A stretch of DNA of 62,526 nt, counting the filler, from Choristocarpus tenellus KU-1152 (taxonomy: Eukaryota; Protista; Phaeophyceae), in assembly GCA_964200185.2 (NCBI GenBank). It is 11 parts of 11 records of this genome, joined end to end, with 100 filler letters (N's around TTAATTAATTAA, not from the genome) between each part and the next. Parts side by side here need not be neighbours in the genome. Positions count along the whole stretch, not along the records: positions 15,822 to 20,186 come from CAXNAD020014895.1; 10 more parts are not named here. The stretch is one strand, 5' to 3'. This document shows positions 3,301 to 20,186 of this stretch, in pieces. Every line of letters starts with the position of its first letter. Within the stretch, counting starts at the first letter, position 1. Below the pieces are notes generated by a model. It saw only the letters and a list, made by a program, of their open reading frames with translations, had not been told where the DNA came from and searched no databases. A program made the translations under genes and the position numbers.

Positions 3301-6300
3301 AATCAAAACAATTCCGTGGCACATTCCTGGTTGGTTGTTGTGAGAGTTAAGAGCCCAGCCAGAGCCTGATACTGTAGACTGTAAAGAAACAGTAGTACCA
3401 TTTCGTTCATTCCGTCTACAAAAATCGTACCTCACCAGTCCCTAAGTTTCCATCGGCTTTTGGGGTCACAGTTGCCACCTAAGTTAGAAGGCTGCTCAAA
3501 ACATTTCACCACTATCACCGGATTGACTCTCTGTCAAAGAGCCCGCAGAAAAAAATCTTGGAGTCATACTGACCAAGAGGTATGCACGATTGGTGCTCCA
3601 TTGGGTTGTAAGGATTCCCAGAATTGATTTTAAATATTAATAGAGTGTTCTTGTTTGAGATGGAAAAGGCCTTCGCTCAATTGTGATGATATTTCTTGAT
3701 AACCCTCTCCTATGCTGTGACACCTTTGGTTTAGGATAAACCTAACCCGAGGCCTTCTATTTTGCACAGTCTGTGAAACATGAAAAATGGGATGGATGCA
3801 TTTAGCAGGACGTAAAAAAGGTGGAATATTTCAAAGACAGCAAAGATGTTCCGTAATATGTCTCTTGCTAGTACCATGGGTATAAAATTTCTGCTGCGAG
3901 TAAAACTAATTTAACAGTTACCACGGCATGGCAGCAACAGCAACAGTGTCTTCCTTCTGCTTGATCTCTTTACGCCATTGATAACCCTTGTCCCAAATCA
4001 CCCTCACTCACAGGTAGGCCTCCGGGTCACGGTAACTTCCTGGCATCCCATGCTGAGAGCTAACTGCGCAGTATTCCACACTGACTGCAATCCCTCCTGG
4101 GAGAAGAGCATTGTATTCCTCACGAAATATAGGCGGTGGTAAGGAGACTGGGGGTTGTGGCAGAGAGTCAGGATCTTGTACCTGCAGATAGAGCCAGTGT
4201 ACAAATAGGCAAGGGCTCAAAGTCTCTGGGGGGGGAGTAGTGGCTGTCCATTTGGGTTCAACTTTTTTAAGTCGCGATTTTTGGGTGTTTTGGTTGCATA
4301 TGAGGGATGGACGATGAATGTGCACTTTTCCTGGTCATGGGTCAAATGGACACCCTGTGTAGACCCCTTCCCCCCCCTAGATACTCTGGGTCAAGGTGAG
4401 GTGGAGATTAAAGGGATTGATTACAATTGGAGTGTCAAGACCTGGACATACCACCGTTCCTCCCAGGCAAGCAAGACTTGGGAAGGTCTAGCGCCTCAAT
4501 TGTGTAGGTGAATATCAATATCTTGACACTTGAGGGTGTGTAATGGGTACCAAGATTCAGGTTGGGGTATAGGCAAAATTCAGTGCAGCATAACAATTTA
4601 ATACCACCACTATCGTGTTCTTATTCTGTTTTAGTTTTTTCATACATGTCATGTCTTCTATACACCTGCATGAACTTGTGTGGAAGAGGTCAAAGAGGAG
4701 AGAGGTATGAACAATGATGGACTTCACCTCTAGAACTATGCCTGAGGAGGGTATCGTAGGGCTTGTTTTATACACTTCTCAGTCTTACCTGAAACTTGAT
4801 GTTGGGAATAGAGGTTGTGGGAATAAAGTCTCCCCCCTTGAGAAATTCACAAGAAACAGTTGATGCCGTCAATATGTAACATACATGAACTCATGTGTAG
4901 CCTTTCTACACACAACAAAACTATTGCTCCTGACATCTTCTTATCAACCACAGTGAAAACAGCATCTCACTACTTGGATCAAAATTCTACTGTCCTGATG
5001 ACCGCTGTGCACTATTCAACTGTGAATAGTAAGGGTTCCGAGGCCAAACATATTGAGCTACAATGCACGGATAACGTGTCATATATTGGGACGTATATAT
5101 CATACAGGGCACTCTCTATGATATATAACAAAATGTGAGAAATTGTCAACAAAATATTTCTCCATGTCAGGAAGGGTTCACACCAAATTAGGTGCAATAC
5201 TCTATGATTCAAGGAGAAATGCGCCCCAAGGTGACACATACCAATGCAAAGCCCTACCAGGAAATGCCTTCAGGTGAAACTGTTGTATTCCTTGAAGGAA
5301 ATATTTGGTGGTGTTTGGTGAGAGAACGTAAAACCAATCTGATTTGAACTGACATAGTCCAAAGCATACCAAATTATATATCCCTTCATCATGTTGTCTA
5401 TGCATGAGGTTCCCTACTCACCTTCTGATGCTGCCACCGACCTACACTAGGATCCTTCTCTCCAGACATTCCTTCCAAAGGGAACTTGCCTTCCTGGCCG
5501 ATAATACCTTGTTGACCTTTGGTGTGAAAGTATTGAACACCCCTCCTGACGGACAGGGTAGGGTATTCCATTGGAGCACTAGTCAAACCCTCTGGACTAC
5601 CTACCCCCTTGCCAAACACTTCAGTGGGATATTTACATCCCCATTCCAAGCCTCTGTAAGGGTCTCTTCTGCTCCAATTCGAGTTCCTCCACCTTTGCTT
5701 GTCCAAAGTCACAGCAGAAGCAGCTACCCGCCTACCAGTCATCAAGTCCCACACGAGAGGGTGTCGCAACTTGCTTCTGCCATTGCAAGAGGTGTCCTTG
5801 CAATTCACACGTTTATTGGTGGGGAGACGAGGACACGCAGATACAGGTCTTACAGCTGCCACCCTGGTTTCGTTGAGTTGTCCATCATTCATTTTGCGTA
5901 TACACTTGTCGCCAACGGAGGAGGACAACGTCGCTGCCGCACTTGATGGTCGTACCCTTTCTTCAACTGTCATTCCAGCGTTACCACTACCACTTACAAA
6001 ATTAAATTCATTTCCACTCATACCAACGATCTTTTCTCTTGCATGGGATTGACTGTGGGGGTGCCCTGTGTTATCAAAGTGGGCAGGCCTGCCACTTCCT
6101 CCCGTCGATCGGGCAGGTACGTATTCAATCCTGCCATCTGTATTGTCTTCTTCAACTTTGTCAGCACAGACATGTCCAATCTTCTTGTGATGGGACGACG
6201 ATTCGGTGCTAGGTATCGTGAACCCTAGGTACTCCTCTATTACTTTTCCGGGCTCGACCTTCCAGTCACGAGGCTCTCTATCACTGGCTCTTGGACCCAC

Positions 6301-15821: not shown

Positions 15822-18800
15822 CTTGCCTGAGTGAACCACGCCACCGCAGAATCACACGATTCACATTGGCGACACCGGTGTCCTCAGAAATAGGATGACG
15901 GGGCATTTCTGGTTGACCGCGGAGGAAAGATGCCGAACTCTAGATCTAGACGAAGACGGAGGGCCCAAGAGCGGAGAACCCCAGACCTGGCGCCATCAAG
16001 AACGCCAGAAGAGGTCCAAGATCACGGATCAATGGAAGACATGGAGTCTTCCTCCCACCTCGACTCTGACACGTCAAGTATGGACTCCATGTCATCCAGT
16101 GCCACCACACTTGGTGAACGGCGCTGTGGATCCCCCCCTTCCCTGCTTGCAGATCGGCAGGCGAATATCAGACCCGTGTTGTCGACCCTAGAGCATTGTG
16201 TTAGCTCGGGCGACCGTGACACCCGTCAGGTCCTCTTCCAGGGAGAGACAGCCCCACCCCCAAGTTCTTACTACTTGTGAGGTGACCATGTCACAAGAAC
16301 AGTTCGGGGATCCTGTGCCATCGTACATCGCGCACCACATTAACGAGTGCGCCAGAACGAACACGGTGCCTCCTGGATGGCTTCAAGACCTGATGGAGCT
16401 CCAAGCTCGGGGAATGGACTCCGATCAAGTAAGATCTGTTGAACAGAGTACCAGCGTCACACGCCTATCATCAATGTTAGAAGCGAATCGTTTCAGGTTT
16501 TCTGCTTCAGAAATTCCATCTGGTCTTGTCATGACAGGTTCGGGAGAGGAAAATTAGCCACTCTTGCTTTCCAAATGGCACGTGACAATTTTCTTGCACT
16601 CTAGGCAGTATGGTACCGCATCCTCTGAGACAATCAACGCTCGATGTGTAGAATTTTTGTCGAAAATTCTTCAAGGTCTAGCTGAAACCTTTTACTTTCA
16701 GGCGTTTGCAGGCACAGTAGAGTGACGTTCAACCAGTGATCTGGCTCGTTTACAATCGTCCCTTGACACTCCCGTCCCCATTACACCGCCGAAGACTTTG
16801 GAGGATGTCCAGAAAGCCCTGATCACTGCGTTCACTCCCGCCCATGCTGTAAGTGTATCAGCTCGTCGACTAACGTCTTTGAAACAGGGGGAGAATGAGT
16901 CTGTTGATCAATATTTTACGTTGCACCACTGCAATTAATCGGTTCTTGGATGATGTTCATCGCACAACGTCGTCCTCAGACAGTTGACATGAAAGCTTTG
17001 CTTGTCGAGCAACTTAAAGTAACGCTGATGGAAGATGGCTTACTCCCTGCGATTCGTCTTGAACAGATTCGGGACGAACCCGCCACCTCGTTTGCGCAAG
17101 CTCGTGACCTTGCCAAACAGATTGAAGCTAACCACTTGTCTGGCCATAACCCCAACCCCATGATGTACACGAGTGCTGTGACTCACAATTCTTGTCGCGG
17201 ACAGGTTCCTCGTAGCGAACTCGAGCAATCACAACGAGAGTGCCAACGGCCACGTAAGGAGGTGGAACGTCACCGAGCAGGGGAGGCAACCATCAACAGG
17301 GCCCCAGCTCGGTCATCGACGGGTCCACCTCCCTCAGCCGGGCACACTGACAGACCAACTCGACCAAAAGACACGTCGCCCTATTCAGCCTCAACGTCCA
17401 GCTCGACGTACACCATCGATCAGCAAAATAGTGTGTGCCAGTACCTGGGTTGTCAGGCAGCGACTCGTGAGGGTCATACAACCCAGTCGTGCCTGGACAA
17501 TCCGCGGGGCGCTCGTTTGCCATACTTACGTCATAGAGGCAGGGGTCATGGAAGTCGTGTTCGTGTTCGTGACGACAGCGAGTCAACACCTGGCCATTAT
17601 GGTCCGCGTCCCTAGGGGTGCCCAGGTGGATTTGACTCCTGTCCACTTGGGAACAGCCATGGTGTTGTTGTTGACACCATCGTAGGGAGTGGCAAGCGTC
17701 AGAGGTTGACACCAGTCATACCTCTTGCCCCGCAGGCATCGTTTATTTCCTGCACGCGTGTCACTAAGCATTTTTCTTTGCCATTAGTTCAACCAAACTC
17801 GTGTAATAATAATGAAACTTGGTTCAACAGTTCTTTGTGCAGATACCCATCCACGCCCAAACCTTTGTCGTTTTCATCACAAAGGTTGCGTGTATCGGGC
17901 ACCGTTGAAGAACAAGAGGAAAATTACTTGACAATTGACACAGCCAGTGATGTACCATGTATTTCTGAAATATTTGTTCGCAATCACCCTCAACTGAAAC
18001 GTTTTGATGTGCATCCTGTCCCACCTGGTGCAATAAATCTACATGCATCAAATGGTTCACCTGTGCATATTCGTGGATTTATTCGTTTTGCACATACACT
18101 TGGTGACACCACATTGCCAGTTGAAGCTTTAGTGATTCCCCAACTTGGTCCCGATAAAATTCTGCATGATAATAGTGCAGGCATTCGGTGCAATCCTTGA
18201 TTGGAAAGAACAACGTCTTTCATTTCACAAACGTTCATGTACCATTTCAGCAAGACATCACATGACAAGGAGCCCCACTCAAGTACCTGATACACGTACA
18301 ACTCCTTCGTGTTATGTGGTGAGTGCGCAACATGATTTTGACACTATACCTGTTCGTGTACATAAACAGTATAACGTACCAGCTGGTCAGGAAATCATCA
18401 TACGTCGCACCACTGATACTAGTCCGTCATTGGATACTGCCGTAGTAGTGGAGCCAGTCATACACTCCATGCCTGCTGTAGATCAAACCACTGAACCTAC
18501 ACATCCACGGAATCGTATCGTAGCTGCTCGCACTCTCAGTACTTGGTCCGCAAGTAATAGATCAGTATTGGTTCAAATGGCAAATCCAACAACACGGAAA
18601 GTACGTATCAGGAAGCATCTTGTGATAGGCCACTTAAGTCTTATTTCAGATCAGGTACCAATTACTGTTAGTACTCTAAATACTGATTCTGCTCCGTTTA
18701 GTGAAGCTAGAGAGGAGTTACATCAAGCCTTCACCAAGTCAAACGCACTCAAATATACCACGTTCAATCAGTCACAAGTGTCTCAACTTTTAGACCTCTG

Positions 18801-20186
18801 TGCTCGTTATAGATCGGTATTTTTGTTGAATGCAGCAGAACTAGGCAGATGTTCCCTAGCTGAAGCAGAATTTCCTATTGAGCCTGGTACCAAACCTGTT
18901 GACAGGAACCCTTACAGAGCAAACCCCCGTACTCAACAAGTAATTGACTCGTGTGTGTTAATACTATGGAAGAGCAAGGCATTATTGAAAAACGTGCCAG
19001 CCCTTGGGGTAGTCCTGTTACTATTGTGGCCAAATCTGATGGCTCCCCACGATTCAGTGTAGAATATAGGTCAACTGTTAACAAACACCTTGTTCGACAG
19101 TCTTAGCCTATACCTTATATAGAGTCTCATATTGATACTGTTGGGGGTGCCAAATTTATCACCGTTTGTGATATTCAGAGTGCATATTGGCAAATTCCTG
19201 TTGCTGAGGATGACATTGATAAAACCGCTTTTGTCACGTCCAGAGGCTAATACGTTTTTAAGAGGATGCCCTTTGGGATATCAAATGCCCCTTGGCAATT
19301 TCAAAGAATCATGTCCTTAGCCTTTGCCAACTTCGGTCCATTGAGTGAGTTGCTAGTTTACATGGATGATTTGATTTGCTTGTTCTCCCACATGGGAAGG
19401 ACATATACACTTACTAGAACAGCAGTTTAAAGCGTTACAAGCAGCAGGTTTAACTTTTAAACCGCCAAAGATCCAGTTTGGACCCAAAGAAGTACATTAC
19501 CTGGGTCACATTTTATCGTCTGAAGGGATTCGTATCGGTGAGGATCGTGTCCGTGCAATCAGTGAATTACCCAAACCCACCACCATCAAAGAACTTCGAT
19601 CTGTCCAAGGTATGATCAACTTTGTACGTAAATTCATACACAACTTCGCCACAGTAATCGAACCGTTAGTTCTTCTCACTAAGAAAGGTGTCAATAAGAG
19701 AGTGGATAAAGAATGGGGATTGGACCAGGATGTGGCATTTTTTAAAGTAAAACAATTACTCACTGCTGCCCCGGTTCTCGTGATTCCTGACCTTACCAAA
19801 GAATTCATCATCCATGTTGATGCCAGTGAGAGTGGTGCTGGAGGTTTTTTAGCACAACCTCGATCCGATAATCCTGCAGACCTAGGTATCATTGCATACT
19901 TCAGCAAGAAATTTAATGAAGCTCAACGTCATTATTCAGCTACATTAAGAGAGTGTTATGCAGTCGTTACAGCCATCACGCATTGGCGACCGTATCTTTG
20001 GGGTAGACACTTCACCTGCATCACAGATCATGCCGCATTGTGTTACTTGTATAGAATGCAGGATACCAGTAACATGCTTACTCGTTGGGCTATTGCTCTT
20101 CAAGCGTATGATTTCACAGTCAAGCACAAGCCCGGTAAGCTCAATGTTATACCTGATACTCTATCTCGTATTTTCAAGTTTGAGGA
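15822..20186 (+). mobile_element. Ty3/gypsy LTR retrotransposon, copy 1 (decayed): LTR end/PBS, gag, protease, RT, RNase H
   Basis: ...TTCACA-T-TGGCGACACC PBS-like site (about 15867); gag with CCHC knuckle ending at TAG 17613-17615; protease LTIDTASDV; RT SPWGSP, RMPFG, YMDD; RNase H IHVDASESGAGGFL...ECYAVV...WRPYLWGRHFTCITDHAAL; frameshifts and stops present. Confidence 0.93.
17613..17729 (+). promoter_or_regulatory. Candidate stop-codon readthrough signal (UAG-GGG plus three predicted hairpins)
   Basis: Stems 17621-30/17642-51, 17659-66/17673-80 and 17691-17729; conserved at 20936-21050. Confidence 0.6.

Follow-up and report, generated by a model that had tools for sequence, protein, structure and literature searches.

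How does a retrotransposon whose gag frame closes with a stop codon make its Pol protein? The question is raised by a decayed copy of a Ty3/gypsy-type long terminal repeat (LTR) retrotransposon, which occupies positions 15822-20186 of the DNA analysed here (the window, 62,526 nucleotides (nt) of joined parts from the assembly GCA_964200185.2 of the brown alga Choristocarpus tenellus). Read-through of a gag stop codon is textbook knowledge for gammaretroviruses; it is poorly documented for Ty3/gypsy elements. An initial annotation had proposed that this family reads through the TAG between gag and pol with the help of structured RNA. Comparison of the family and its relatives indicates that the junction of gag and the protease gene (pro) is probably a site of programmed stop-codon read-through helped by a 3' hairpin. 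The in-frame stop, its context and the covarying hairpin are conserved; from these we infer, by analogy with known systems, read-through itself and a stimulating role of the first hairpin past the stop (hairpin 1).

The gag frame of the window copy ends CGT CCC TAG GGG TG, with the TAG at 17613-17615, and beyond it the same frame stays open for 194 codons (17616-18197), taking in the open reading frame 17706-18200 and the protease motif LTIDTASDV, exactly as first annotated. Such a TAG could be a decay mutation of a dead copy, and the hairpins behind it could be there by chance. The window copy does have several other frameshifts and stops, and the piece has stems of at least 10 base pairs (bp) at two further places. 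However, the stop is shared within the family. A second genomic copy, L001 (84-90% identical), has the same TAG, with a private 4-nt duplication right behind it, and the NCBI gag protein P0153 terminates at exactly the same residue as the window gag. Family copies were compared one by one, and in runs with 696-828 contigs each on the stretch the best 40 of 178 differences between family contigs and the window, ranked by support, were examined: none of these falls at 17613-17615, none is a common frame-shifting indel around the TAG, and many are family-majority letters from which the window departs. Because L001, P0153 and the bulk of the family contigs have the same stop, and not a sense codon, the TAG of the window is not decay. 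Taken with the homologous stops in seven lineages and the hairpin covariation described below, this makes decay and chance a scarcely credible explanation.

One NCBI gene model, P0006 (L001:862-1421), bridges the gag stop with an intron that joins the wrong gag frame to the pol frame. It was considered as a fused gag-pol copy and rejected, being a spliced model with another gag frame and no sense codon at the stop; its intron probably arose in annotation, as an artefact of the read-through stop.

To relatives outside the family we turned with an exhaustive profile search using the post-stop protein, which returned 141 relatives, all short fragments, whose contigs were then compared. A single in-frame stop separates the gag zinc knuckle from the pre-protease region in seven lineages (protease about 45-63% identical): the window copy with L001, L024, L006, L023/25/26, L002/L022, L003 and L004. 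The junction reads UAG GGG UGC in the window, L001 and L024, UAG GGU UGC in L003, UGA GGG GGC in L002/L022, UGA CGG in L006 and L004, UGA CGA in L023 and L025, and UGA CCA in L026. The stop and its next base are thus UAG-G or UGA-C/G in all 11 copies, and never UAA. The frame runs unbroken from gag through the stop into the protease in six copies, which puts pol in the gag frame in the window copy and five relatives (L002, L003, L006, L023 and L024); later indels are found in L004, L025 and L026. The post-stop region has no conserved start codon. UGA-CGG is among the classical leaky contexts, and UAG-G is found in murine leukaemia virus (MuLV) (PMC3159437, PMC13517186); by analogy, the stop types and 3' contexts found here are of the leaky kind.

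Several further junctions could not be interpreted: in L027 gag and protease lie in different frames with many stops and no hairpin, L005 has no gag upstream, and L017-L021 have repeats and stops upstream. The repeats are tandem units of about 14 codons (…VVDT.HPV.GSPTP…) upstream of the protease of the P0148 family, where gag should end (L017:1300-1560, also L018 and L019). The contigs L007-L016 begin past the stop, and only L010 includes most of the hairpin. No additional loci were found by a protein scan of viral contigs or by pattern scans of prokaryote genomes and viral contigs, and a metagenome scan yielded L005 and L006 only.

Hairpin 1 stands as initially described: a 10-bp stem (17621-17630 with 17642-17651) closing an 11-nt loop after a 5-nt spacer (17616-17620). 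The minimum free energy fold of 17610-17735 contains this hairpin and the two that follow it, at -56.2 kcal/mol against -42.1 ± 3.7 kcal/mol for shuffled sequences (z -3.8; 0 of 200 as good). Perfect stems of at least 10 bp start at three places in the 4365-nt piece, and shuffles have about 2.7 start positions each; given this rarity, the chance that one starts so close to the gag stop, at a distance of a few bases, is roughly 0.4%. The piece 15822-20186 matched no Rfam family at E values up to 1.

The stronger evidence is comparative. A stem of 9-12 bp follows a 5-nt spacer in five lineages (the window with L001, L024, L006, L023/25/26 and L002/L022). The spacing is common to the window, L024, L006, L023, L025, L026, L002 and L022, the hairpin is compact throughout, with a loop of 6-16 nt, and the truncated L010 carries most of the stem as well. 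In an alignment of nine sequences from these five lineages, 92.2% of pair cells form standard pairs, compared with 77.9 ± 2.7% in shuffles (0 of 500 reached the observed value), and both sides have changed in 6 of the 10 pairs. The covariation score was 0.55 versus 0.27 in shuffles (0 of 500), and partners slid by 1-3 columns pair in only 29-59% of cases. RNAalifold, a check suggested with the initial annotation, predicted the identical hairpin 1 structure unaided, and a covariance model of the hairpin was used as further support. The outer C-G pairs are invariant, perhaps on account of Pro and Gly codons. It is the inner pairs whose changes are informative: the peptides encoded there are completely different, and since the peptide is not conserved, the constraint acts on the RNA. 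The alignment thus indicates that hairpin 1 is conserved as RNA by compensatory changes across five lineages.

These observations fit a simple scheme. Gag and pro-pol would occupy one frame, interrupted by one leaky stop, UAG-G or UGA-C/G. Termination there would be the rule and yield Gag. In a minority of cases, to judge from what is known of UAG and UGA suppression, a near-cognate tRNA would be accepted at the stop and the ribosome would go on to make Gag-Pro-Pol, the Gag:Pol ratio being set by read-through as in gammaretroviruses. While the stop occupies the A site, a hairpin 5 nt downstream would lie at the ribosomal mRNA entrance and favour read-through; this placement is proposed by analogy with the 8-nt spacer of MuLV and the 5-9-nt spacers of frameshift sites.

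A conserved stop could also go together with Pol made by another route, such as splicing across the stop, transcription from an internal promoter, a subgenomic RNA or internal initiation, while the hairpin would serve packaging, dimerisation, ribosome pausing or RNA stability. Precedents exist: the junction of the Candida albicans element Tca2 directed no read-through and a minor promoter is present (PMC2194720), and plant Ty1/copia elements adjust Gag:Pol by splicing (PMC5580714). That L003 and L004 have the stop without the hairpin would also suit such a route. Nevertheless, we consider it unlikely in view of the strict in-frame layout in seven lineages, the exclusively leaky stop types and contexts, the hairpin-stop distance fixed at 5 nt and the lack of a conserved start codon past the stop; moreover, the sole spliced model over the junction, P0006, uses the wrong gag frame and looks like an artefact. 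The hairpin-less L003 and L004, which still have UAG-G or UGA-CGG, could equally be taken to mean that the stop context suffices for read-through, as is known elsewhere (PMC3159437), and that hairpin 1 is kept for a non-translational reason. We hold this to be very unlikely, as the 5-nt distance stays constant in five lineages while the hairpin sequence and the peptide change.

Read-through helped by hairpin 1 remains our favoured explanation, and several facts weigh against it. L004 and L003, the latter with an intact gag of 675 codons, have no hairpin or at best a degenerate one. In the lineage P0081 (protein only; 57% identical to L002) sense codons run across the site; with one extra codon there, its gag-pro frame is continuous. 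Every copy examined is decayed somewhere, and the covariation has a small base of nine sequences from five lineages. The folding energies of 125-nt stretches do not discriminate, with z-scores of -3.4 to +0.1 after the stop and -2.7 to +1.1 before it; as pre-stop stretches in relatives reach -2.7, z-scores were rejected as proof of a signal. The spacer of 5 nt is shorter than the usual 7-12 nt of known read-through structures (PMC3159437), and the gag-UGA-pol junction of Tca2, with a predicted pseudoknot, gave no read-through in reporters (PMC2194720). Alphavirus read-through sites show a flux between stop and sense codons comparable to that seen with P0081 (PMC3159437). The backbone of the protease tree is not resolved, so the tree does not give the order of hairpin gain and loss. 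On balance, the core of the initial proposal, gag-TAG-pol in frame with structured-RNA read-through, is supported and came through the computational tests named for it, which concerned a sense codon at the stop and the frame of pol.

The proposed cassette was larger than hairpin 1, and here the outcome was mixed: all three hairpins are present in the window, but only hairpin 1 recurs in other lineages, and hairpins 2 and 3 are confined to this family. Within the family, the cassette variants among the best 40 of 178 differences are all compatible with the fold. A GTT GTT GTT run (17662-17671) lies in hairpin 2, and L001 and some contigs have a 3-nt deletion in it (17663), with which the hairpin still folds. 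Between the window and L001 the cassette is 93.5% identical and the following 115 nt 95.7%, so the cassette is no more conserved than what follows it, and this pair of copies provides no argument. A divergent subfamily (contigs of about 2.7 kb, three runs) aligns with the window in two blocks only, 17603-17722 and the protease core (17910-18040), and is unlike it before, between and after them, which marks the stop-plus-hairpins block as a conserved island. In this subfamily the linker is replaced by unlike sequence of similar length (190 versus 187 nt), and the gag tail is also replaced. Fold energy, the compatible variants and the conserved island weakly support hairpins 2 and 3, and a role for them in read-through would be hypothetical.

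A pseudoknot between loop 1 and a downstream box had also been suggested. Both sequences, ACTCCT in the loop and GGGAGT at 17685-17690, are there. The pairing itself found no support: the best duplex of the loop with the next 70 nt is no better than in shuffles, a fraction of 0.08-0.99 of which did at least as well in 7 of 7 lineages, and a MuLV-type pseudoknot is not supported. A GGGAGU(A)G box lies directly after hairpin 1 in L006 and L002, and overlaps the stem in L006.

The loop has another recurrent feature. It keeps (C)CUCC in the window (CUCC at 17637-17640 within loop 17631-17641), L006, L023, L025 and L010; the CUCC is always read xxC UCC, and the remainder of the loop varies. The motif could be kept for its Ser codon or for a sequence-specific contact made by the RNA, and it may or may not take part in read-through. 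A bolder proposal is that the clade carries an old, self-contained module of stop, 5-nt spacer and compact hairpin with a sequence-specific (C)CUCC loop, which would act via pairing with ribosomal RNA or via a host factor and would need no pseudoknot. We put this forward as a tentative idea, more probably wrong than right.

Among other Ty3/gypsy elements, Leng et al. in 1998 and Gao et al. in 2003 are said to have described, for Dictyostelium Skipper and others, a single in-frame stop before the protease with a predicted downstream structure; the host group of Skipper is other than brown algae. MuLV and other read-through sites combine a stop, a short spacer and a 3' structure (PMC3159437, PMC13517186). 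The present junction resembles MuLV in its in-frame UAG followed by G between a nucleocapsid zinc knuckle and the protease, in a G-rich spacer that precedes 3' RNA structure and in the family majority starts with GGA as in MuLV (PMC13517186), and in its presumed purpose, the Gag:Pol ratio. By contrast, the MuLV spacer is purine-rich and 8 nt long and leads to an H-type pseudoknot, where a 5-nt spacer and a plain hairpin are found here, the element is of Ty3/gypsy type in a brown-alga host, and some of its lineages use UGA. The junction is therefore not a MuLV-type signal.

The UGA lineages have a different counterpart. Alphaviruses and tobra-, furo-, pomo- and pecluviruses read through UGA-CGG or UGA-C sites with a 3' stem (Firth et al. 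2011, PMC3159437), and the contexts UGA-CGG and UGA-CGA of L006, L004, L023 and L025 are like these. Likewise common to both is a stem of 10-12 bp near the stop, backed by compensatory changes (PMC3159437). The viral stems, however, enclose about 100-150 nt and lie 7-12 nt from the stop, unlike the compact hairpin at 5 nt described here. A compact hairpin is also known from human SEPN1, where it lies 6 nt after a UGA and stimulates read-through, although this is a cellular selenoprotein gene with a 16-bp stem, a 5-nt loop and an unrelated sequence (PMC3159437). In-frame gag stops have been reported for the LTR retrotransposons Tca2 and SIRE1 (PMC2194720). Tca2 shares with the present family an in-frame stop (gag-UGA-pol) and a predicted 3' structure; it differs in being a Ty1/copia element, in showing no read-through in yeast reporters and in having no reported comparative covariation support, which is present here. 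Its own study left the mechanism of bypass unresolved (PMC2194720).

The features of the window copy are collected in the table below. The order of domains, gag, protease, reverse transcriptase and RNase H, is that of Ty3/gypsy elements, and integrase comes after RNase H in L024, L025 and L026. Pol is broken by frameshifts and stops after 18197, so this copy is dead. The host is a brown alga, C. tenellus or a close relative: the closest protein relatives are NCBI products of C. tenellus, the window gag tail is 82% identical to P0153 from this species, and L001 sits on a contig of GCA_964200185.2. The family is highly repeated: an 801-nt stretch around the junction is matched by 45 to 828 contigs in each of four public runs.

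Features of the window copy and family variants in the stop-hairpin region
Feature	Position	Strand	Remarks
Gag C-terminal part	16908..17612	+	Open frame; listed open reading frame from ATG 16950 to 17615
In-frame TAG, candidate read-through codon	17613..17615	+	Between gag and pro-pol; context CCC UAG G
Spacer GGGTG	17616..17620	+	5 nt, G-rich; family majority has A at 17618
Pre-protease linker and aspartic protease	17616..18197	+	Gag frame; LAPQA motif; catalytic LTIDTASDV 17928-17954
Hairpin 1	17621..17651	+	10-bp stem, 11-nt loop; conserved element; fold, covariation, covariance model (R1)
Hairpin 2	17659..17680	+	9-bp stem (17659-17667 with 17672-17680), 4-nt loop; family-specific; on GTT triplet run
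GGGAGT box	17685..17690	+	Proposed pseudoknot partner of hairpin 1 loop
Hairpin 3	17691..17729	+	Bulged stem, family-specific; predicted fold
Reverse transcriptase fragment	19266-19427	+	PF00078, E 3e-5
RNase H	19612-20184	+	PF17917, E 4e-34; clipped by end of piece
Variant G>A	17618		In spacer
Variant T>C, family majority	17666		Hairpin 2, U-G pair to C-G
Variant A>G	17711		Hairpin 3 loop
Variant A>G	17718		Hairpin 3, U-A to U-G
Variant T>C	17719		Hairpin 3 bulge

Some further observations concern the element and its surroundings. A PF03732 match identifies a gag fragment upstream of the gag tail. The zinc-knuckle-like motif of gag (17436-17492) has the unusual spacing C-X4-C-X8-H-X4-C, and C-X4-C-X(3-8)-H-X4-C covers the window and the gag ends of L002, L003, L004, L006, L023 and L024; the usual spacing in retroelements is C-X2-C-X4-H-X4-C. 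Between the stop and the protease, where the linkers are otherwise unalignable, an (L/V)(A/V)PQA motif is kept in the window (17730-17760) and in relatives, and may be a protease cleavage site. A 46-nt stretch at 15822-15867 is present twice in L001, about 4 kb apart (78-123 and 4052-4097), and may be an LTR edge or leader of the element. In L024, a non-LTR retrotransposon with an endonuclease (PF03372) and RVT_1 lies immediately upstream of the Ty3/gypsy copy (L024:1-2700).

Taken together, the arrangement is of a known kind, and its comparative support is unusually good for a retrotransposon; no paper on read-through in brown-alga retroelements turned up in the literature searched. The signal rests on comparison, with the stop in seven lineages and a compensatory hairpin in five, and so goes beyond a single predicted fold. 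For annotators, it gives a reason against calling such a gag stop a defect or bridging it with invented introns, as in P0006. For research on recoding, the family and its relatives offer a compact natural set of hairpin variants, including lineages without the hairpin or without the stop. The signal may also provide a means of tuning expression in brown algae. Should the self-contained module prove true, retroelements of stramenopiles or brown algae would have their first described recoding signal with phylogenetic support.

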